DNA of 64,000 nt from Tubulanus polymorphus (lineage: Eukaryota; Animalia; Nemertea): assembly GCF_964204645.1 (NCBI RefSeq), contig NC_134034.1:9994962-10058961 (forward strand), written 5' to 3'. The translations under genes were made by a program, and so were the position numbers. Under the pieces are notes generated by a model. The model ran no database searches and had not been told where the DNA came from. It was given only the letters and a program-made list of their open reading frames with translations. Shown here piece by piece: positions 44,900-61,417 of the stretch (position 1 is the first letter of the stretch; each line of letters starts with the position of its first letter).

Positions 44900-46020
44900 T
44901 TATTCGTATCTACAAACTAAAAACAATTTAAGTTCCCTATTACAGGTCGCAATTCCACATCCAACTTTCGACGCCGATTTCCAAGAATCCTAGATGATGA
45001 AATTAATAAAATATCACTGCCTGTGACAGAAAGGGTAGCACCAGTTAAAAGGCAGAGGTCGGGTCCACCGAAAATACCAATATATATACATGCACCTTTA
45101 AGTTATTTTACTATATCGGAATATTTTTTACGGTTAACCGCCGATCACACAACTAGTATATATGTACTTCGATTTCAAAATCAAACCCCCTTTTTCGTTC
45201 CCGGCAGGTGTGTGTGGTGGGTTTGTAAGATACACCAAATAAAAACAAATCAAACGAAATCTACCAATTAATTAGATAATAGGGTCAATCCATAGTTAAA
45301 GATAAAAAAAGAAAGAAAAATTTTTTTACCATAGATGTGGATTGTGCGCAGTATTTGGCATTTCCCGGACAACCTTTTAGCATATAGTTGGTTTTCGTCG
45401 ACCAGGCTTTAACAGCCACTCTCATCAGATTCCTGTTGGCGATCACCTCGCTGACCATGTACAGGTTTTCGGGGTATAGGTAAGCGTGCGACGAAGATTC
45501 CATGCTGCAATAATTGGCGTGTGCTTTAGCCTTTTTCGCCAAATCGCTCGACCATTCCTTTGAAGGCACAAAAAATGTGTTTATCGTTAGCATGAAAATA
45601 GCGACACAAATTTGAAAATATCTCGGGTAGTGCTGAACACATGAAGTCTAAAAGATCAGTTTTCGAAAGTGTGCTGATAGATGTCTAATGTCTGGTGTTT
45701 GTAGTTCTTTTTTAATTAAACATGTCTCAGGCGAAGAACTGAACACATGCGAAGTGTTGGACGATCAGAAATTAGAATAATAGTGATGAAATATCTAATT
45801 ATGTCTGGGCGCAGGGTCCGGGCATGAAAGCAGATGTAGGAATGACACCAAAACAGATTGTAGTCCTTAGTTTCATCTGTGTTTTTCATTCAAGATCAAA
45901 ATATTCACTTACGATTCCAGTCGATATTTTGTCGTGTTCAGCAATGGCTGTTGATCTCAGTTCACCGGCCGCGGCCACTCCCAAAAATACCAACAATAAC
46001 GAAGCGCTAAGATACATCAT
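44900..46020 (-). CDS. Small secreted CAP/SCP/PR-1 domain protein, 141 aa (CAP1)
   Basis: Exons 46020-45913 (signal peptide MMYLSASLLLVFLGVAAAG), 45557-45330 (EWSSDLAKKAKAHANYC, ENLY, AVKAW), 44989-44900 (SWKSASKVGCG..C...LVCRYE). Probable non-coding exon and TATA box at about 46455-46520. Confidence 0.88.
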
Positions 46021-47987
46021 CTGTAATTTACAAATATGGTAATACCTGATATGAGTATGATTGCTTCTCCGCCAGATGGTGCTAGTAGTCAGCAGGTCGT
46101 CTGCAGATTCGATTAAAACCTATTCTTATTTTCTCATATTCAATGAATTACGAACAACAGCAATATTATATATAACCTTGAAGCTCAACGCACACGACAC
46201 GGAAACAAAACAGGCTTGATTTCGGAAAAGTTGTTCCCGAAACCGGGTTTCTCGTTTCTCGTAAAGGCTCACAGTCAAGGAAACGCTCGAAAACACGTTT
46301 CTGTGTCCTGTTTCAGTGTGTCCCTGCGTCGTAGGCGTTGGGCTTTAGATCAATCACCAGGCATTAATTGATAAAAATCAATTGAAAATGAACTGAATTT
46401 TCATCGACCAACTCTGAAACGGCTCGCTGTCGAAAAGAAAATCCCAATACTCACGACTCTTCACGGTGCAGACGAATGAGTTCGATGAGCGATGATGACA
46501 TCTAGGAATGTATTTATACGCTGTAGAATCAGATCCCGATAAAACCGGGCTGGTTCATGAGGTGATCAACTTCATGTTACACGCAATGATACCTCAGTTT
46601 ATCGCGTCCATATCCGTTTCGACAACGTGTCTGAGAGACAGACATAGCACGTGCAAACTTTTCCGATCGTTCCCTGCAATTGGGTAGCAGCTTTTACGCC
46701 GGGTGTTAGGACAGTAAATATTTCAGAGGTGACAGAATAAGAAGAATGTTCTTCTATTGCGAGGATTTGAGTCGAAAAGATAACTATAGTATATCTACGT
46801 ATATACGGGAAAAGTGGTCAAGGAAAAGTTTTGAAATACACACAAACTTTGGTAAAATACATAACCTTCGGTAAAATACCTCTATTTATCTTTAAATTAC
46901 GTTCAAAACGTCGAACATCGTCACGCGACACTGTCACCTTGTAACGGAAGGTGACGGGTTTAGAGGGGATGGGAATGGTCAGGCGGCTCAGCCCTACGTA
47001 CCTGTATACTTGCGGCGGTTAAGATTTTTAAAACCTGGCTCAAGTAAGTTACACGAATAGAGGCAATACGTTCCTTGTCATTTTTTTCTAATGCTCAGAA
47101 AATGATTCACTTTTTCGATTTATAAGCACCCGACTTTACCTGTGAAGTCGTGAGGAGCTATACACCTAAACGTATCCGTTGCCCCAGTCGACGCAGATAC
47201 CTGTCGACGTGGAAAAGAAAGACTTGGTAGATGTTGGCTACAGAACTAGGTTGGTCTCTGAAACTGGTCTCAAATCTAAGCCATGACTATAACGTATGCA
47301 ATTCGGGTCAGGGGGTGGTTGCACAGTTGTGGCTTAAGTCCAATAGTGGTCTTATAAATTTCAAGTCTGGTCTTGAATTGTTACATTGGCTACAGAACTA
47401 AGTTGGTCTTAGACTGGTTTTAAGTCTAAGCCGTGACTATGCAACCGGCCCCTGGCCTGTAACCAGAGACCGAATCGTCGTGAAGTTTTGATTTTAAACT
47501 TTGCACATCTTTGAGCCCACGATGCAGAGAAACACAGGAAGAGAGACAGCAAAACGTCTCCCGCGTTTCCCCGTGTTGACACGTTTACGATAATTATCAT
47601 TAATAATTTCATTTCCACAATAAATTACAACATGTCATAAAGAAATATACGAAAATATAAAAATATGAAACATTTTAATATAATGTGGAGGAGATTAGAT
47701 GAAGCCAATGAAGGCTTATATAAACTCTAATCCCCTGGCACACACCGATTCGCACAACCTCATACACACATGCAGTCATACACCTTCACCCAACATACAC
47801 ACAAGAAACAAGAAACTTAGTTTCCGAAACAACGTTTCCGAGATCTAACACGTTTGTTTCCGTAGTTTGATGTTTCCGCGTTCCACCGCCGGGCGAGGAT
47901 CGAGAAACATGGTTTTGGGAAACAACGTTGATTCCGTGTTTCCGCGTTTCATTGCACCGTGTGCGTTGGGTTAAATAAACCCGCGCA

Positions 47988-49088
47988 CTAGTCGCAACTA
48001 GACCGTTGATTGGTGATCGTTCTGAACGAAGGGACGACGCACACTCGTCTCGTGGCGTCTCTGAACCTCGCGTTCGTTAAACAATAGATGAAAAAGTTGC
48101 CGCACGAATCGACGATAGTCAACAACAGCGCCAATTTACGAAACACCATTTTCGTTTCGACGCTGAGAAATTTCGTATCGACGCGAAATAAAACGAGTAA
48201 ACGATCGACGCTACCGGGCATCTCGCAGACGAAAAAGAAAATAACGACGATCGTGACCATTTTGAGTATTTGTTTACTCTGCTGTGCGCTCTGAGTCGAC
48301 GTCCTCGACATCGTGGTCGCGTTGACGAATTTGCCGCGTTGCTTTTTCGCCGATTTCAAAGCTGTCATCAACAAACAGTTTGAGACGATTACTCCCACGA
48401 TGGGGAGCACGACGCCACCTATTGTGAATGAATATCGGTCAGGTACGGCGTATTTTTGTTTGATTTCGGGTTCTAGCAACGTTTTCCCCTCTAAGACGTA
48501 GGCGTATTGACCAGGTTTTAGGCAACGCCAACGCCACAGGGACGGGGATCTATCGGGAGCTATGAAATGCCAGAACAAGCCGAAGCTCCCGAGCCCGAAT
48601 ACGACCACGACTACGACGACAATTTTAGTCTTGAGGATGTTTTGGTGCGTGAAGGGAAACCGGACGGCCAGAAATCGCTCGACGCTGACCAGCACGACGG
48701 TCCAGTTGCGCAAAAGCAGCAACGGGAAAAAGAACGGCAGAGTTACCGTCGAAATGTCCCAGCCGAACGTCCAGTCGTCGAAACGAAATAAAGCCTCGCC
48801 TAGCGTGTGATGGACGCGTACTATACGAACGGGGTACATGAAGAACATGTCCAGCGAGAACAGCAAATCAAAAACGGCCAGGATTTTGATACCGCGGTAT
48901 GCGCTCGAGTTGTCCAACTGTCGCAGAACGACTAGCGTAAGGATATTGACGACGATGGCGATGGCGCAAACCGGGAAAATTACGAAAGCGAAGAGGTAGA
49001 AACTGAAGCGTGTGTACCATGTTATCGGCGGAATATCGTCACTAGTGCACGGTCTGCTGCTGCTGGTACTGCTGCTTGTCGTATTCAT
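47988..49088 (-). CDS. Intronless class A orphan GPCR, 366 aa (GPCR2)
   Basis: Seven TM segments; LAVFD, RNW..VERFLAVRFP, CEMP, DSCGNFFIY..NARFR. Confidence 0.9.
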   Translation of the reverse strand: MNTTSSSTSSSRPCTSDDIPPITWYTRFSFYLFAFVIFPVCAIAIVVNILTLVVLRQLDNSSAYRGIKILAVFDLLFSLDMFFMYPVRIVRVHHTLGEALFRFDDWTFGWDISTVTLPFFFPLLLLRNWTVVLVSVERFLAVRFPFTHQNILKTKIVVVVVVVFGLGSFGLFWHFIAPDRSPSLWRWRCLKPGQYAYVLEGKTLLEPEIKQKYAVPDRYSFTIGGVVLPIVGVIVSNCLLMTALKSAKKQRGKFVNATTMSRTSTQSAQQSKQILKMVTIVVIFFFVCEMPGSVDRLLVLFRVDTKFLSVETKMVFRKLALLLTIVDSCGNFFIYCLTNARFRDATRRVCVVPSFRTITNQRSSCD

Positions 49089-49714: not shown

Positions 49715-50716
49715 TTATTCGTATTTACAAACTAAATACGATTTTAACCATTTATCACACGTTGCGACTCCACATCCAACTTTCGATGCCGATTTCCAAG
49801 AATCCTAAATGATAAAATGAATACAATTTCATTGTCTCGAGTTAAGTTATTACGATTTAGTTATCTATGAATTCGACCAGTTCATTTTCAATATTTTAGC
49901 TCTGGGTCAAATCTGCATATGCACAATCGTGGCGGAACTGGATCCTGAATATTTTCAACGATTTAAAAGAAAAAAAAAACAATTCTACAATCAATACCTT
50001 TGTTACTGATCGTACGCAGTATTTGGCATTTCCCGGACAACCTTTTAGCATATTGTTGGTTTTCGTCGACCAAGCTTTAACAGCCGCTCTCATCAGATTC
50101 CTGACGGCGATCTCCTCGCTGACCATGTACAGGTTTTCCGCCTCGTCGTTACGGTACGATTCCATCGATGACTCGAATCCGCATATATTGGCGTGCGCTT
50201 TCGCCCGTTTCGCCAAATCGTTCGACCATTCCTATTTAAGAAACAAAACGCGTTACGATCGTTAGTAAGAATATATGCCAAGCCTAAACGACAAAAAATT
50301 ACGTATTGATTTCCATACGAAACCTTGTTAGTTGTTTAAATTATAATGTAATTTCTGAACGCGAAATTAATTAATTCATTCATTATTTTGAATATGGTCG
50401 ACATACGCAGCCTGGAACCAGGCGTTCTCTTTAGTCTGGACGTTCAATCTCTTAATAACAATCAATGTCTGGTGTTTGTAGTTCATATTCAAGCTCATGA
50501 AGTATGGTGATAACATCGCGAGATTCGTAATAAATATCTGAATAGGGGGCCAGGTAGCTAGCTACATGATGCTAACATGAGTAGAAAAAACGCACGAGAT
50601 TCACTTACGATTCCAGCCGATATTTTGTCGTGTTCAGCAATGGCTGTTGATCTCAGTTCACCGGCCGCGGCCACTCCCAAAAATACCAACAATAACGAAG
50701 CGCTAAGATACATCAT
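49715..50716 (-). CDS. Small secreted CAP/SCP/PR-1 domain protein, 143 aa (CAP2), paralogue of CAP1
   Basis: Exons 50716-50609, 50231-49998, 49804-49715 with the same structure as CAP1; homologous non-coding exon and TATA box at about 51290-51360. Confidence 0.88.
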
Positions 50717-50956
50717 CTGTAATCGACAATAATAGTGGGGAGAATTCTAAGTATTTCTTTACTTAGTCACTAGTGTCGCTAGTGTGCGGTGGGATACCAA
50801 CTACTGTGACAATAGAGGATACCGCGTAAGCATCCACCAGGTGTCGCTAGCGTGCAGGAACTAGTTCTATAAATGAACGTAAACGATCTAGACACGATTT
50901 TTAAAAACCAGTTTATCTTGATCGAGAACTAAATTTTGATCAATAATGTTTCCTAC

Positions 50957-51914: not shown

Positions 51915-53265
51915 ATGAACCCAACCGGACAACTTTATTCGCAAAACAATGGTTTTTCAAAAAGATGGGCTACTGATGTTCTGTCATTGATCGAATTTAA
52001 ACAACAGGGTTATACAGACATCCTGGATATAGGCTGCGGTACCGGAGAAGTCACTAACGTGTTACTGAACCAAATCAATAATGTTGAAAAGATTATTGCT
52101 TTCGATAAGGTAAATATATATATAAAGGCTCAATTCTAAGAGACATTTAAAAAAACTAAGAGAGTATATAGTGACGTTTAAACATGAAAGATGTGAATGA
52201 CTCACAGCTAAATTTTCCACTCACGGCTATCAAATATTCTATTTCAGAACGAATCAATGATTGAATTGGCTCGATCAGAAAATTCGAATCCCAAAATTGA
52301 ATATCTAGTCGCTGATGTGACCAAACCCGAATCGTTCAGACCGGAGTGGCGACAGAAGTTTGATTTGATAACTTCATTTCTAGTCATCCACTGGACTCCG
52401 AATCAGTATTCGAATTTAGAAACGATGAAATCTCTACTTGCTCCGAACGGTGAAGTCATCCTGTTGATGTCAACAACATCGTCCATCGTCAGTATGTCCG
52501 AATTGGTAACAAACTTGGAAAAATGGTCCCCTTATTTTCAGGTATGAAACTAAAGCAGTTATGGATACTTGTAACTGCCCAGAAGACACTGATATTCCCA
52601 AAATCCCCGCATTAACCCCAGATCCCAGTCTTTCCTGGCTCCGTTACTTGGGAGCCTAATACTAAAGGTTTCTGACTAAACTGGTCATAAAAGAAACTAT
52701 ACATATAACTTTTATAATTTTTCAGGGATTCACTCCGGAATGGATATACGAACCGGGCTGGGAGGAATATACTGAATGGAGATATCCTGATGAAGTTACC
52801 GGATATCGACGAATGGCTGAATCGTTGGGGTTCACCGTTAAACAATGCACGAACAATTCTATCGATTATGTATACCCGGATCTACAATCTGTAAAAGGTT
52901 AGTGTTGGGAAACCTCCCCAGTCAGTCTCGAACTTAACGAGGAACAAGAAAAAAAATGAGTAGAACAAACGATCGTTTGTGTTTTGTGGTGCGACGCTGC
53001 AAGGGATGGAAGGGGAGTGAATATGTAGCCCATTGAATATGATCCACAAGCCTGGACTGGTTATGTCCGGAAATAACGTTATCAATCGATTTCAGATGCC
53101 TACAGGACGTATCTACCGCAGGCAAAGCGAATTCCCGAAGCGAAAATATCCGAAATCATCGACGACGCCATGGACGTTTTCTTGACGAAATTCCCACTGG
53201 ATGAAAATGGAAAGTCGCATATGATTGGCGACGCGTTTGTTATGCATTTGCAAAACAACTCATAG
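51915..53265 (+). CDS. Class I SAM-dependent methyltransferase, juvenile hormone acid O-methyltransferase-like, 276 aa
   Basis: Exons 51915-52109, 52248-52541, 52726-52897, 53096-53265. N-terminal LYSQNN, motif I ILDIGCGTG, AFDKNESMIELAR, IEYLVADV, FDLITSFLVIHW, LLAPNG. Confidence 0.85.
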
Positions 53266-53665
53266 ATACGATCCACCATCCGGTACTGGTGTGGCAAGCG
53301 AGGATCCACCAGGTGCGCTAGCGTGTACTCGAACAACGATGCCGTATGTTTTGCACACATTCAATTAAACTCTATCCGTTTGTTCTCAAATTATAGTGAA
53401 ATACTTGCGTTTGAGTTTTACTTGAACTTATCGTTAACGAAGTTGGTATACGACTTTCTGCGATAGACACGAATGGTACGGATCTAAAAACATTATTCAA
53501 TATTTACTTCATTCAATGTCATTTAATCGTGTAACGTATTTAGTAGTAAGCATTGAAATTTTACACAATAAACATTTCGCAAATCTGGTGAAATTGTATT
53601 AGATTTATGAGAGGGTTGGTTTTCACTTGTTATTCGATGACATATTGTAACGTTGTGTTATTTAG

Positions 53666-54240
53666 ATCATACAATCCCTATACCCAGTTTGCCATGGGTT
53701 GCTACTATCACTTAACCGATCAATTCGTCTGTTTGATGACATATGTCATCCACGTCTATATTCTACCTTTAACTTTGATAATTGTATCAAATTCTGTGAT
53801 AATAATTCAGTTATTCAGAGGCTCTAAAATGGTTTCGTCCGATCAGAAAACTACAAAATCGCAACGAACAACAATAATGCTTGTAACAGTTTCACTAGCA
53901 TTCGCAATATTTACACTTCCATCCACTATAACTATTCCTACCAATATCGTTGCATCAAAAAGAATTCATTTTAGACATATTCAGTAAAATGTTGTTGTAT
54001 AACTAAGACCTTCAGCCATACCACACCAGACAGACGCGTGATTTATTGATTATCATTTGTTCTAAAATGATAAGTTTATTTTATTGAAGAGGTCCATAGA
54101 ACTGTCCAGTGGTTTACGCTACAACTTCACAACTCGATTCACTTCAATCCTACTTTCTCGTTCTTAATAACTTGATAACTGTCATTCTCTTGATTATCAT
54201 TATATTTTTCCACTTTTTTCATTTTCGTATGAAACAATCT
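53666..54240 (+). pseudogene. Fragment of a class A GPCR (TM5-TM6, degraded TM7)
   Basis: YILPLTLIIVSNSVIIIQL...RTTIMLVTVSLAFAIFTLP, then a stop at 53987; no TM1-TM4 exons recognised nearby. Confidence 0.6.
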
Positions 54241-54714: not shown

Positions 54715-57139
54715 TCAAAGATGCACTTCGCCGATATTCAGATTCTTTTCGGCGAAATATTCCCGCATTTGCGCGGCAAAATTTTGCATTCGCCAAAGCT
54801 CGAGTAGCGACCCGCGCTCTTTGAAAAAGTTCCGCTTTCGTTCAAATTGGCTAACGGGCAACACGTAATGGCGCTTAGAACCGTCTTTCAATACCTGTTC
54901 GTAGTTATAGGTTAACGCGTATTCGGTATTATCGATCGTCACGGCCCCGCTGTCGTATTTCCTCAGCGAAATTCGCAACACCGCCGCACCGTCGACCCAC
55001 TGTATACGATATCGCTGGCGACTGTAAAAGTTACCCAAAGAAAACGCGACGAACGTGTCGGCGTCTCGGTTCCAGAGCATCGGCTGCAGCACGTGCGCGT
55101 GCGACCCGACGACCACGTTGACGCCTAATCTCGAGAAGATGTTCAACCAACGCGTCTGGCGCGAGGACTCGCATTCCTGGTATTCCTTACCCCAGTGAAC
55201 GTACGCTATCATCTGATCGACGTTCTTGACAGCTGCAAACGATACGTCCCGTTCGATCGCCGCCTCGTCCAGCACGTTCACGATGTAAGGCAACGGGAAC
55301 GAACTGAAGCTATTGTACGCGTCGGTATAGAACAAAATGGCGATTTGTATACTGCGTTTAGTTAGAATCAGCGGCGAATTCTTTTTCCTGTCGCGTTCGT
55401 TTAGAAACGTACCCGAACGTCGAATGCGAAGGGAATCGAGGGTTTTGATTGTGCTTTCTACTCCGTCGGTTTTTCGATCGAAAGCGTGGTTGTTCGCAGT
55501 CGACAGCGCGTCGAAGCCGACATCTCTCAGGGCTCGAGGTAGCGCCGCCGGACCGCTGAAACGTGGGAAGCCGGTGTAAGGTTTATGACCGATTGGCAAT
55601 TCCAAGTTGCCGATTGTGAAATCGGTAGCATTCAGTATATGCCGCATGTACCTGGAAAAATTAATTCTATGTAAATTACTGAAATAAAGAATCTCACAAT
55701 AAGAATAGTAACTAAAATTCCGAAATTTGCCAAATTTCGGAATTTTAGTTACTATTCTTATTGAAGCTCAAAGATGGTCCTTGAGCTACTAGTTTATTTC
55801 GACTTCTACTTGATCCCAATAGTCATCTTCAGGATTATGGGAATGAAGTCAAAACGTTGAAATAACCTATGGTAGGTCAAGGAAATATTTTGGACTGGCT
55901 CTATTTCTTATAGTGGCATTTCACATTATCGTTACAACACGTGCACTGTGTTTCATCAATGGGTACTAAGTATATTATTCACTGTGGCAAGTGAGGATCC
56001 GCCAGGTGTTCTAGCGTGCAGTAGGACATCAACTACCGGTACAGTGACATGATTCCATATTATGATTCCACATATTCCATAAGTCGTCATCCACAAAAAA
56101 AGCATCGAAGATCTCTCTGTCCGTGATGATACTGTGCTCAAATAGTGCCATGTACCCGTCGTCTTTGGTACAGTTTTATCACACAAGAAGATCGTAGAAA
56201 TGCCGTTTTCACAATTATACGACACGTTTTTAGTACGGTAATGATACATTGGCACGGTTTGGTGACGTTAAACTGTACCAAAAATGTACCGAAATTTTAC
56301 CAGTGAACCGTAAAATGGAAAAAGTGTTATACCTGAACGAGTAGTCAAAATTGTAGAGTCCAGTTTTGTTGTTGAATGCAGCTTTCTGTAACGTATCGTG
56401 TCCCATTATATCTCCTGTGAACTGTAGAGTCACTGTTTGATAACGACCATAGTGATTGCGACGCCTTCTCAACATCAGGGTGTAATACACAACAACCAAT
56501 ATCAACAGTATAAAACCTGCTCCTACAAGTCTCTTTATTCTGAAACAAAAAAATTACTCAGTGATCCATCTCAGACTTGTTACATTTCTGTTTTTGTCCA
56601 TCGGAAAAATTAGAACCCCCGTGAAGCTGGCTCCCAGTTCCCGGTTCCCGGTTTGGCTCCCGATTCAAAACCATTGAATCGGGAGCCGAATCGGGAACCG
56701 GGAGCCGGCTACGGGTTCGGCTCCCGATTCAAAATGTGAAGCTGGCTACTTATTCGATTCGACTCTATTGCGGACAGCAGGTAAACATAATTGCATAACT
56801 ATGTCTGCTGATATGAGTTGACCGCAACCTTGTCCTCGGCCACCAGGCTAATCGAGACGTCTGTATTAACACCATGCGTGTGACGATTGCCTCCCGATTC
56901 AAAACCATTTTGAATCGGGAGCAGAATCGGGAACCGGGAACCGGGAGCCAGCTTCACGGGGTGAAATTAGATGGGTGTCCATGAGGTGAGGACAAGTTTC
57001 GACTTTCAAGTTTAGTGAAAATTTTACATAAATCTTACAAAATTATACATATAGTAGGTTTTGATTGTGTGGCTATTCGACTACGGGGAATGAACTACCT
57101 TAATGAACTTGGTGAATATGTTGTTTACCTACTGATCAT
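54715..57139 (-). CDS. CapA-like (PGA_cap, poly-gamma-glutamate capsule synthesis family) metallophosphoesterase with N-terminal membrane anchor, copy 1
   Basis: Exons 57139-57129 (ATG ATC AGT AG, tentative), 56539-56333, 55651-54715. Motifs FTGDIMGH, GNLE, GFDALSTANNHAFD, VHWGKEY, VVGSHAHVLQP, FSLGNF; anchor LVGAGFILLILVVVYYTL. Confidence 0.88.
56617..56961. mobile_element. Palindromic MITE/foldback element in intron 1 of capA-like copy 1
   Basis: TIRs CCCCGTGAAGCTGGCTCCC / GGGAGCCAGCTTCACGGGG; internal CTCCCGATTCAAAACCATT(TT)GAATCGGGAG hairpins. Confidence 0.8.
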
Positions 57140-57337
57140 GACTCCTATGCGACTTGCACGACTTGCATCGACTGATCTGTAAAGCTTGAAGGCGTATAGG
57201 GATACACCAGCAGCGCTAGAACAGCTGCAGATGTTTTATAATGAACCTAACACAGAATACAGGACTTTCGCGAGTGACAGCTTGTGGGCCGCCGCCTGTT
57301 TAACAACAGGGAACCTTATTGGGTAATATTGGGTAAT

Positions 57338-57880
57338 AGACCAGGAGCCACGGACATTTTATTCATAGGAAGAGAGAAAAATTGTTTAACATGCCCAATT
57401 TGTAGGAAACCACCCGAGTAACAACGAATGACGTTGCTGCCGGGTCATAGCCTGTACCTTTGGCCTAGGCGAGCCCCTAAAAGGGGGGTAAAATTTATTT
57501 TCAAGTAGCCTTATACACATGGAAGTAAATAATGTAAGTTTCATTCATTTCTCGCTATCTTTGAATAACTTTATTTTCAGCCCCCCCCCCCAAAAAAAAT
57601 GCCACTGTTTAGGCCCCGGTACAGAAAAAAACTGCTGTCATGCTGAAAAATGATATACCTACATTCATTTCTATGATTATCGATTAAATTATGCATTTCT
57701 AATGATCTTTGAATAAAGATAAATTTTACCCCCCTTTTAGGGGCCCGCCCTAGGCCAAAGGTACAGGTTATGACCCGGCAGCAACGTCATTCGTTGTTAC
57801 TCGGGTGGTTTCCTACAAATTGGGCATGTTAAACAATTTTTCTCTCTTCCTATGAATAAAATGTCCGTGGCTCCTGGTCT
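57338..57880. mobile_element. MITE with ~160-bp near-perfect TIRs between the two capA-like genes
   Basis: AGACCAGGAGCCACGGACATTTTATTC...GGGGGGTAAAATTTA is mirrored at about 57720-57880. Confidence 0.9.
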
Positions 57881-59524
57881 CCACAATCCCAACGTTCTTT
57901 TGGTAAAGATCAATGATCATCAACCAGAGCATAGTTGTAGTACAATAGCCACACTTAAACGTGGTGAACGGACGATAAGATAAAAAAACCCACTGGTTGG
58001 GTCTTATGCCTTATCTTATGGTTGGGTTTTTATCTTATCAACCACAGCAACTTGTTGAGATCCCCGCATGAGACCTGCAAGGCCCTCCCAAAATTATCCA
58101 AAGCCCTGCTTCAACTTTCAGAATTCGAGCCCATTTATACAAATCTATCTTGCTGGTACGTTCGTCAAAATAACTACTTCGTAGAAAACAATGATTAATT
58201 ATTTGCATCTCTTCCTAGAATTGATATTTTGATTGGCATCTCTTACTAGATATTTCAATTCTTGAGAGGACTGAATTCTAGTGAGATGATTTATGATAGG
58301 GAAGTTAATGATATTCTAGAATATTGAATTTTGTTAGATTGTGCCAGGATGATAGATTCAGCTTTTATATGTTCATATGTTCCCCTACTCGTTACACCTG
58401 TTATCATTCCATTGTGACCACATTCTCAGTGTCAAGAACCTGCGGACTGTGGTAGCTCTTCATCTTCACAGATCTATTGTTTAAAAAATAATTTTTCAAT
58501 CATATTTTCGTTGTTGATTTTTCAATATGGTCGGTATTTCAGATTGGATTAAACAAATTTGTTCTCAGAAGGATGCTGGCGTTGAGCAGTGGCATTAACA
58601 AGGTTAGGGTTATATAACTGTAACTGGGATCTTGAAACGGTCGCTGGTTGTTATGATGCCAATATTATTATATCGTTATGCAAGAAGGACCTAGATATTG
58701 AAGATTTAACTATGCTACGCCGATGTGTCGGGCAGAACGCTTCTGTACATCTCCAGAGATCTGTTCGAAAAAAAGAATATCCTTTTTCAACGGATTTACG
58801 TTTTTAATTCTTAACGCGAGCCTCTTGATTTCGATATGTTGATACATGGACATAAGAAAATCCCACAATTGGAAAAATATCGATCGTTTCATTGATCATC
58901 GGATTTTCAGTCAGCGAATGAACTAGGAATGTCTAGACTAGTTATTTATACTCCAATATATCTCTCGATAATGCGCATAAACCATTGCTAAATAGAACGA
59001 TCATTTCAATTTGTGTCATATGCATTAGAAATCATCTATGAATTTATGTACCAGTATCTATGACTCTGGCGCACATTAACGTCCCCTATTTATCCGTCAG
59101 CTGCGGCTAATTTCATATTTGTCTGTACATCGTAACAATCGGAACGTACGATTTCAGCCAGGATCATATAGAAAGAGAATCTCGATGCGGGAGTATGGGG
59201 GCACATACTGAATTTTACTGAATTCTAATTTTTTAATTCTAACGTGTCGCGCTAGTGGAGCGAAACTGTTGATCCTTTCCCTGCTGTAGATATCCTGTGC
59301 GTTAGGTAAGTTTCCATCTTAGCTGAGATAGCTCATTTTGCGATATCCAGGTAAGCTCCAATTGCTCGAATCATAATTGTATATTTTACCCTGCGAGATA
59401 GGTCACTTGATGCGTTTTGCCGCTTTGGAAAATCTTAAGTAGCTGAATAGTAAATGAAACGGGTAAATAAATTAATTATGATAAACGAATGAATTGATAG
59501 CATATAAAACTATCATTTTAGAGA

Positions 59525-61348
59525 ATGTTTCGTCGCTATAAGAAGTTACTAGCCATCTGCGCGTTGCTCGTGGTCGCGTATTACGTCATCTACCGAAGAT
59601 CTCCGGCGATGGTTTCCGATGATGCCCGAACACCGCCGAAGACGATATCGATGGTATTTACGGGTGACATCATGGCGCACCGGAACATAACGCGATCGGT
59701 GTTCGACGAGAAAACTCAAACTTACGATTACAACCCAATATTCAGGTAACTTTATTTCAATGTAACTGAATGTTTCAACTGAAGTTTTGAACACATGTGA
59801 AGTGTGGACGATCAGTTTTTGAAAATGCGCTGAATGTGATAAAATGTCTAATGTCTGGTGTTTGTAGTTCATTTTCAATTAAAAAATGTCTTAAGTGAAG
59901 TTTTAAACAAAAGAGTTAAGCGTGGACGATCAGTCTTTGAAAGTAAGCAGATAAAATGCCTAATATCTGGTGTTTGAAGTTCATGTTCGATTAAAAATGT
60001 CTCAGGTGAAGTTTTGAACACAAGTGTGAATGATCAGGTCTTGAAAGTGTGCTGATAAGATGTCTAATATTTGGTGTTTGTAGTTCGTTTTCAATTAGAA
60101 ATGTCTCGGGTGAAGCACTCAACTTAATTAATCTTTAACTGAAATTACGAACTCATTATTTTACCTGTTTTTAGTTACAATGCTCTATTTGCAGCGAAAA
60201 CCCGTAATTTATGAAAAAATAATCGGCTACTACTTCTCGTCTTAATCTTAACGTAAATATTTGGCATCATCTGTTTAAGGTACGTGAAAAGCAGATTATC
60301 AAGCGCAGACTTCGCGATCGGCAATCTTGAATGTACAGTCGGTTCTTCTCCGGATGCGGACTGGGTGGACGGCCACTTTGCGATGGTCGTGCCTCCGTCG
60401 TTCATCGAAGCTTTACGTAACGCCGGATTCGACGTGCTGGTTACGGCAAACAATCACGCAAACGATATCGGAAAAGCGGGTATCGTCAAAACGAGCGAAA
60501 CTCTAGACGAATTCGGCATCAGACACACGGGAGCGTTCGTCGACGGTGACGCGCGTCGGAGACTCTCACCGTTAATTCTCGAAAAGGACGGGTTCCGTAT
60601 CGCGCTGCTGGCGTTCACCAGACACGTACCGTCCGAGTTTAAAATGGAACCGCCGACCGAAATGAACTATCTCGAAGAAACGACTATTCGTCGCGAGGTG
60701 GAACGCGCTAAAAACATGAACGTCGACCAGATCATCGCCTTCGTGCATTGGGGTAAAGAATTCCAAGAACACCCCGATTACTATCGGCAAAAATTGTGGT
60801 TTAAATTTTTCAAAGAACTCGGCGTGAATATAGTGATCGGGTCTCACCCTCACGTGCTACAACCGATGGTTTGGGATAAAAAGGACGACTCCTTGGTCGT
60901 GTATTCGTTGGGTAATTTCTTAGCCGATATGAAATACAAGATTATTTCGCTGAGAGGTGCGGCCATTTTTCGTCTGGTTCTGGAAAAGTGCGCAGACGGC
61001 AAAGTATCGATTAAAACGGCCGACTACGATTTGACTTTCATTCAAAAACGAATGACCGAGAACGAAGAAACGTCGTACGTCATTCTACCGATCGACGACT
61101 TCGAAAATAACGCGAGTTTTTTCAGCGATTTGAAAACGAAAAACGATTACCTGCTTCGTTCGGCTTCGGATTTGAGACGATTGATGGCCGCCGAAACGAA
61201 GGGAATCTACGAATCGTGTCGCGGGAATAGTCGACGCGGAAGTCTCGAGTTCGAATCGCAGTACTTGCGCATGAATTCAACGGCGCCGCCTGTTAGAATA
61301 TATCCATCGATCTATTCGGAAAACCCGGAGGAGTCGATTGCTCCGTAG
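59525..61348 (+). CDS. CapA-like (PGA_cap) metallophosphoesterase with N-terminal membrane anchor, copy 2
   Basis: Exons 59525-59745 and 60280-61348 (phase-2 GT-AG intron within the Arg codon of F-R-Y). Motifs FTGDIMAH, GNLE, GFDVLVTANNHAND, VHWGKEF, VIGSHPHVLQP, YSLGNF; anchor LLAICALLVVAYYVIY. Confidence 0.92.
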
Positions 61349-61417
61349 CCGGCCTGACCTTCACCCAGCCCTGGCAGTGGTTGTCTCCACACAGTGATTG
61401 GTAAATCAGACACACTA

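Follow-up and report, generated by a model that had tools for sequence, protein, structure and literature searches.

A six-copy family of CapA-like enzymes in the nemertean Tubulanus polymorphus, likely acquired from a marine Flavobacteriaceae-like bacterium

We analysed a 64,000-nucleotide window of the genome of the palaeonemertean Tubulanus polymorphus (assembly of 268 Mb in 77 contigs; the window covers 9.99-10.06 Mb of contig C10), which holds two divergently oriented genes of the bacterial CapA family, genes A and B, at positions 54715-61348. The two genes belong to a family of six copies that was likely acquired from a marine Flavobacteriaceae-like bacterium, most plausibly in one event, and retained as predicted metal enzymes of the secretory pathway. 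The worm copies nest in a bacterial clade without close eukaryotic relatives, and they are physically integrated into the host genome, with gene structure and base composition of host type. The family is a genuine, old and retained transfer, and a newly seen case of a known type of bacterium-to-animal transfer.

A six-frame profile search of the whole genome found six PF09587 loci on three chromosome-scale contigs. Contig C10 (14.3 Mb) carries gene A, gene B and the loci at 10.29 Mb (P0002) and 10.63 Mb, which are the two close paralogues of gene B (L009 and L008, respectively), while contigs C12 (11.5 Mb) and C1 (32 Mb; P0004) carry one locus each. As determined by tblastn and splice-site inspection, five of the six copies have an intron at the identical codon and in the identical phase, with AG/gt donors and ag/G or ag/A acceptors. 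The C1 copy is intronless, being colinear with its 361-residue protein, and its N-terminus resembles a cleavable signal peptide; the N-termini of the remaining five consist of a basic stretch and one hydrophobic helix. The gene B group additionally carries a disordered tail of ~45 residues. The motifs GD..H, GNLE, NNH..D, HWG and GSHxH show no variation across the six worm copies and 60 aligned homologues, and GD..H is retained in every first exon of the family. Altogether 72 columns are invariant among the six copies, including the E of GNLE, NNH..D, the H of HWG, and HxH.

The nearest relatives of the family are bacterial. Sequence searches used separate exons, and full proteins in the form of the public models P0001, P0002, P0004 and P0121. 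Three protein searches, with gene B, gene A and the C1 copy, returned, after the worm paralogues, only CapA-family proteins on bacterial-size contigs, the named ones coming from Aureivirga, Polaribacter, Tenacibaculum, Flavivirga, Lutibacter and other Bacteroidota. Bacterial CapA proteins share 41-46% identity with the window genes and 49-53% with the C1 copy. No other eukaryote, and no cnidarian, is among the best 120 matches of these searches. A family profile run against 1.84 billion representative proteins found nothing between the worm and the bacterial proteins, and no cnidarian, among its best 150 matches, and a search of the ESM Atlas gave bacterial clusters only and no eukaryote. Of 524 confirmed matches in GTDB, searched with one genome per species, two Tenacibaculum proteins rank highest (50-51%), ahead of those of Flavobacteriaceae and then of Cytophagales and others. 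The nearest match, P0017, is encoded within a densely packed bacterial gene array that also includes a protein bearing a type IX secretion system (T9SS) tail. The likeness to Bacteroidota CapA proteins, which an earlier note on this DNA had proposed, is borne out: all nearest relatives are CapA proteins of Flavobacteriaceae or other Bacteroidota, and the worm copies nest inside the Flavobacteriaceae clade. One of the homologues, P0003 (a metagenomic bacterial protein of 514 aa), contains an internal duplication of ~150 residues, which may be a genuine one in tandem or an artefact of assembly.

Phylogenetic trees, all computed on the last-exon region, recovered the six worm copies as one clade in each of four analyses, in which PMSF denotes posterior mean site frequencies, SH Shimodaira-Hasegawa, SH-aLRT the SH-like approximate likelihood ratio test and UFBoot the ultrafast bootstrap:
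FastTree, 259 rows: six worm copies in one clade, local SH-like support 94
Quick PMSF tree, 93 rows: six worm copies in one clade, SH-aLRT 93
Quick PMSF tree, 74 rows: six worm copies in one clade, SH-aLRT 96
Careful tree (LG+C20+F+G4 PMSF), 36 rows: six worm copies in one clade, UFBoot/SH-aLRT 78/89

The worm clade lies within a Flavobacteriia clade in the 74-row tree (98), with Cytophagia, Bacteroidia and others outside, and the Flavobacteriaceae clade enclosing the worm copies has a support of 98/98 in the careful tree. When the worm lineages were re-placed singly, the C1 copy alone, gene A alone and the C12 copy together with the gene B group each came out as sister to the same 15-16 Flavobacteriaceae sequences. 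Since the singly placed lineages attach at the same node, the worm grouping is not merely mutual long-branch attraction. The branching order recovered, (C1,(A,(C12,(L008,(B,L009))))), is the one predicted by a single intron gain after the C1 lineage had split off; the branch uniting the five intron-bearing copies is weak (68/43).

These findings suggest a path by which the bacterial gene may have become an animal gene family. The intronless C1 copy with its signal peptide would be closest to the original state, one intron would have been gained before the other five copies arose, and the bacterial export signal would have turned into an N-terminal membrane anchor. The proteins would be routed through the secretory pathway, either secreted or anchored as type II membrane proteins, with the catalytic domain luminal or extracellular, and the metal centre would act on an extracellular or luminal substrate. 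A Golgi or cell-surface location is predicted from the N-terminal hydrophobic helix alone. The intron gain proposed in the earlier note agrees with the one position common to five of the six copies and the intronless sixth.

The two genes of the window are organized as follows:
56333-56539, minus strand: gene A exon coding for the hydrophobic segment, four consecutive arginines (RRRR) and the motif GDIMGHD; a putative acceptor (AG at 56541-56540) marks its 5' boundary
55652-56332, minus strand: gene A intron of 681 nt (GT..AG, phase 2), which splits the F-R-Y Arg codon
54715-55651, minus strand: gene A last exon, 311 codons and stop, carrying the C-terminal subdomain and the bulk of the PGA_cap domain; acceptor ...ttccag/G at 55653-55652
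59139-59305, plus strand: gene B 5' untranslated region (5'UTR) exon, reaching at least this far upstream, from a contig of sequencing run X4; donor GTAAGT
59306-59521, plus strand: gene B 5'UTR intron, 216 nt, GTAAGT..AG, from the run X4 contig
59522-59745, plus strand: gene B first coding exon, with ATG at 59525, a basic N-terminus, one hydrophobic helix and the GDIMAH motif
59746-60279, plus strand: gene B coding intron, 534 nt, GT..AG, phase 2, in the same Arg codon as in gene A
60280-61348 (to the stop), plus strand: gene B last exon, with the rest of the PGA_cap domain, the C-terminal subdomain and the disordered tail

The last exons match Pfam PGA_cap (PF09587; curated cut-off 27 bits) with 162.9 bits (E 1.3e-47) for gene A and 179.2 bits (E 1.3e-52) for gene B. 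The divergent pair with full PGA_cap domains (E 1e-47 and 1e-52) therefore stands where the earlier note had placed it, and the translations of both genes contain every motif listed there: GDIM(G/A)H, GNLE, ANNH, HWG, GSH(A/P)H and SLGNF. The shared phase-2 intron is likewise real: in both genes a canonical GT-AG intron interrupts the same Arg codon (AG/G) between F and Y, the first coding exon of gene B stopping at 59745, two bases into that codon. The joined product of gene B equals the public NCBI model P0001, annotated as 'capsule biosynthesis protein CapA-like [Tubulanus polymorphus]' (429 aa). Three other statements need adjustment. The spacing, given as ~2.4 kb, is ~3.0 kb between the coding regions, or 2.6 kb counting the gene B 5'UTR exon (59139-59305). 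A basic N-terminus followed by one hydrophobic segment is present in gene B; gene A has the segment, with no in-frame ATG before it. Duplication is evident from the family of six, but the window genes are only 41% identical and hence old paralogues, not a recent pair.

The 5' end of gene A deserves separate description. The frame of the exon with the hydrophobic segment opens right after a stop at ~56553, and a pyrimidine tract and the AG at 56541-56540 precede the exon. Because there is no in-frame ATG, because these acceptor-like features lie upstream, and because the paralogue P0002 has a short extra 5' exon, gene A likely has a further short 5' exon as well. Inspection by eye, without RNA, of the sequence upstream of 56541 gave no single candidate that stood out. 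The NCBI model of gene A is P0121, 'PGA biosynthesis protein CapA-like', of 420 aa, which starts at the Met inside GDIMGHD, spans 54889-56406 of the window and is then joined, from within the last exon, to a CAP-domain gene lying 4 kb downstream (50731-49718). As this model skips across genes of the opposite strand, it is probably a chimeric annotation in which gene A is fused to a CAP/cysteine-rich secretory protein gene.

The coding sequences of the family look like those of old genes under selection. All six copies keep open frames, and the splice sites of the intron-bearing copies are intact. The ratio of nonsynonymous to synonymous substitution rates (dN/dS) is 0.2-0.6 in every partition among gene B, L008 and L009, while the deep pairs have saturated dS with dN of 0.5-0.63. 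The retention proposed in the earlier note accords with these values, since host-like base composition, intact frames and catalytic residues and a dN/dS below 1 were all found. The central 150 codons of gene B, L008 and L009 (window 60461-60910) are nearly identical in DNA, with 0-2 differences per 90 nt in places, and the flanks of this segment differ by 15-38 per 90 nt; correspondingly, dS is 0.09-0.17 in the central segment versus 0.3-0.46 in the flanks. This contrast between a near-identical centre and differing flanks points to gene conversion between loci 230-570 kb apart.

Transcription was approached through contigs of four sequencing runs of one study (X1-X4), mapped on 55400-61399. 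In one contig of run X4, 59139-59305 is followed immediately by the sequence from 59522 onward; the joint, reported as 59301/59518, is ambiguous by the four letters TTAG and equally fits 59305/59522. The 216 nt omitted (59306-59521) are a canonical 5'UTR intron of gene B, as they start with GTAAGT and end with a pyrimidine tract and AG. No contig of X1-X4, which are not RNA on record, was seen spliced across either coding intron, and none was spliced for gene A, so that the sign of spliced expression, a check suggested in the earlier note, is confined to the 5'UTR intron of gene B. Runs X2-X4 also gave no contig on the gene A exon with the hydrophobic segment (56200-56599). Apart from the one spliced X4 contig, we rejected X2-X4 as expression evidence, given that their contigs are patchy, cover intergenic DNA and have a word share similar to that of low-coverage DNA. 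At 59484-59634, contigs of X2 and X3 cover the unspliced border of the gene B 5'UTR intron and exon with five differences (including 59514, 59528, 59549 and 59555), three of which recur in the spliced X4 contig; these may represent a second allele or a close copy.

Several points weigh against a single, functional acquisition from Flavobacteriaceae. Monophyly of the six copies is moderate in the careful tree, where a single origin is required by 74% of the bootstrap trees; the worm branches are long throughout; and the C1 copy is nearer in raw similarity to bacteria (49-53%) than to its paralogues (~44%). The trees do not include cnidarian and nematode CapA-like sequences. None of the four sequencing runs is recorded as RNA, and the X4 contig over the 5'UTR intron is the sole direct sign of a spliced transcript. 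Gene A has no in-frame ATG ahead of its membrane segment; given the missing start codon and the chimeric public model, it may be poorly expressed or incomplete. Finally, the Flavobacteriaceae CapA subfamily is without assigned biochemical function, and its gene neighbourhoods are uninformative: those examined (L012, L015, L091) show no conserved partners and no capB or capC.

With these points in mind, we regard a single transfer as probable and two related transfers as a distinctly smaller chance. Two or more independent transfers from related Flavobacteriaceae, one of them for example giving the C1 copy and another the ancestor of the five intron-bearing copies, would fit the missing intron, the cleavable-looking signal peptide and the lower G+C content at third codon positions (GC3) of the C1 copy (0.45) together with its greater similarity to bacteria than to its paralogues, as well as the 78/89 support for the six-copy clade and the 26% of bootstrap trees that need two changes. 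All four trees nevertheless hold one worm clade, the singly placed lineages share their attachment node, and one transfer followed by an intron gain is the simpler account; we therefore consider repeated transfer rather improbable.

Loss of function, with one or both window genes surviving as decaying relics, is unlikely, gene A being the likelier of the two. A relic would fit the branch of gene A, which is the longest (1.27-1.5), the absence of an ATG ahead of its membrane segment, the GSHAH that replaces GSHPH, and the lack of X2-X4 contigs on the exon concerned. Yet gene A keeps a frame of 311 codons, both splice sites and all invariant catalytic residues despite saturated dS against its paralogues, and a good acceptor precedes its membrane-segment exon, as in P0002 with the short extra 5' exon.

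Vertical inheritance would mean a CapA-like gene of ancient animal origin, common to cnidarians and nemerteans and lost in nearly all other lineages; this is very improbable. It could draw on the CapA-like (PgsAA) genes described for cnidarians (PMC5375639) and on PF09587 genes in plant-parasitic nematodes (PMC4901422). Against this, no eukaryote other than the worm is among the best matches of the three protein searches or of the search against 1.84 billion representatives, and the worm clade lies inside one bacterial family-level clade (98/98), which is unexpected for an ancient animal gene. A metazoan CapA-like clade close to the window genes, the outcome that the earlier note had named as contradicting a transfer, did not appear in the trees, built as they were without the cnidarian and nematode sequences.

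The CapA loci belong to the worm chromosomes. GC3 is 0.45-0.63 in the worm copies and 0.60-0.65 in neighbouring host genes, as against 0.17-0.35 in the closest bacterial homologues. The G+C content of the introns is 32-37% versus 49-52% for the exons (0.37 for the gene A intron versus 0.52 for its exons). Contigs of run X1, which behaves as whole-genome DNA and may share its sample with the assembly, cross the exon-intron borders of both genes. Bacterial contamination or mis-assembly, for which it could be said that the family is otherwise bacterial and its closest relatives are marine bacteria able to live on the worm, can thus be set aside, because canonical spliceosomal introns occupy one position in five copies, the loci lie inside contigs of 11-32 Mb beside animal genes for G-protein-coupled receptors (GPCRs) and CAP-domain proteins, GC3 is host-like and far from that of the bacterial relatives, and X1 DNA contigs run over the exon-intron borders, with one spliced contig at the gene B 5'UTR intron.

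To relate the family to known enzymes, we used the AlphaFold model of gene B, which has a predicted local distance difference test score (pLDDT) of 85.9 and a predicted template modelling score (pTM) of 0.83. In the model an N-terminal helix (residues 2-24) precedes a calcineurin-like core (39-344), which is followed by a C-terminal helix and a tail that is disordered (392-429, pLDDT <50). A Foldseek search with it found MslH first (E 1e-15, template modelling (TM) score ~0.53), and then 5'-nucleotidases and other metallophosphoesterases, all with a probability of 1.00. As modelled, gene B has the calcineurin-like metallophosphoesterase fold.

By sequence, too, MslH, a lasso-peptide C-terminal Trp epimerase (PDB 8GQ9), is the sole match among solved structures (E 1.7e-10). 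It carries out metal-dependent acid/base epimerisation by two His/Asp dyads, and its authors propose that CapA is an epimerase introducing D-Glu into polyglutamate (PMC10406935, PMC8179263). The Glu of NLE, the Asn-His..Asp and the second His of G(S/H)xPH align between the two proteins. Specifically, Glu44, Asn87/His88/Asp91 and His295 of MslH have aligned counterparts in the worm, while the His259/His261 pair is unalignable; these residues are common to the whole CapA family and so do not discriminate within it. The two proteins differ in that their identity is 16%, that MslH is cytoplasmic and acts with a recognition partner for RiPPs (peptides made on ribosomes and modified after translation), and that the worm has no lasso-peptide cluster. 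The NCBIfam equivalog of MslH, NF038314 (cut-off 700 bits), scores 47.7 bits with gene B and 25.1 bits with gene A, both below the cut-off, and no NCBIfam equivalog was found for any of the six copies. The reaction catalysed may be acid/base epimerisation of an acidic peptide or polymer, or its hydrolysis, on the model of MslH; phosphoester hydrolysis is the other candidate. The glycans, phosphoesters and microbial polymers put forward in the earlier note are putative substrates.

PgsA/CapA of the Bacillus PgsBCA system shares the Pfam family and the fold with the worm proteins and is likewise membrane-anchored with an extracytoplasmic domain. Unlike it, the worm genes are not of the Bacillus-type lineage, and they lack the partners PgsB/CapB and PgsC/CapC. 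The absence of these partners, stated in the earlier note for the window, extends to the whole genome: no match of TIGR04012 (CapB) or PF14102 (CapC) was found in the 268 Mb at E up to 1, with the controls detected. The worm proteins would accordingly not be subunits of a classical polyglutamate synthetase, and canonical polyglutamate synthesis in the worm is unlikely. The closest counterparts are the CapA proteins of marine Flavobacteriaceae (Tenacibaculum, Aureivirga, Polaribacter), which share the full-length domain, a C-terminal subdomain of ~100 residues, 41-53% identity, the invariant residues and an N-terminal export signal; spliceosomal introns, host-like composition and membrane-anchor N-termini set the worm genes apart from them.

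Precedents for the transfer of CapA-family genes from bacteria to animals exist in two other groups (PMC5375639, PMC4901422). Cnidarian PgsAA is described as a bacterial acquisition tied to the polyglutamate propellant of nematocysts (PMC5375639, PMC5566210), and in plant-parasitic nematodes PF09587 appears under the name 'candidate polyglutamate synthase' among tabulated transferred genes (PMC4901422). These cases concern other phyla and, as far as the matches show, another donor, and the six copies with a shared intron are specific to this worm. Our literature search found no paper linking CapA with nemerteans, one match (PMC7841239) proving unrelated to the question. The CapA family was thus taken up by at least three animal groups, namely cnidarians, plant-parasitic nematodes and T. 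polymorphus, which hints that the enzyme is useful alone, without the bacterial polyglutamate machinery.

Bacterial genes that were kept, given introns and multiplied in animals are few, and each documented case shows a route to new chemistry. The worm family, with one intronless signal-peptide copy and five copies with intron and anchor, is a compact record of the conversion of a bacterial into an animal gene, and a tractable system for the role of orphan CapA enzymes. Its interest lies in this series from intronless to intron-bearing copies, in the six-fold expansion, and in the cnidarian parallel in an animal with extrusive organelles (PMC7897414). It is conceivable, if improbable, that nemerteans independently repeated the cnidarian recruitment, with a bacterial CapA-family enzyme in secretory cells producing or modifying an acidic polymer or peptides with D-amino acids for extrusive granules, mucus or toxins. 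Tubulanus species possess pseudocnidae in the proboscis (PMC7897414), and these would be one candidate site, the link to extrusive organelles being speculation. If such recruitment took place, the six-copy expansion would reflect specialisation among gland cell types, and CapA-family enzymes could work without the classical synthetase, CapB and CapC being missing here as is reported for cnidarians. It would also fit the proposal of CapA as a peptide epimerase (PMC8179263).

Downstream of gene A, open reading frames and Pfam matches reveal the following animal genes:
53607-53987, plus strand: rhodopsin-type GPCR fragment
51915-52547, plus strand: class I methyltransferase exons
49718-50731, minus strand: spliced CAP-domain gene, 4 kb downstream of gene A
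47988-49088, minus strand: single-exon rhodopsin-type GPCR of 366 aa, after the first CAP-domain gene
44903-46023, minus strand: second CAP-domain gene, beyond the single-exon GPCR

The two tandem CAP-domain genes are 73% identical in one exon. The coding intron of gene B holds a tandem array (59837-60115) with 2.6 copies of a 104-bp unit, which is an extremely abundant repeat of the T. polymorphus genome, reaching a summed contig depth of up to ~110,000 versus ~30 for single-copy DNA. Intergenic DNA at window positions 56600-56999 contains another high-copy element.

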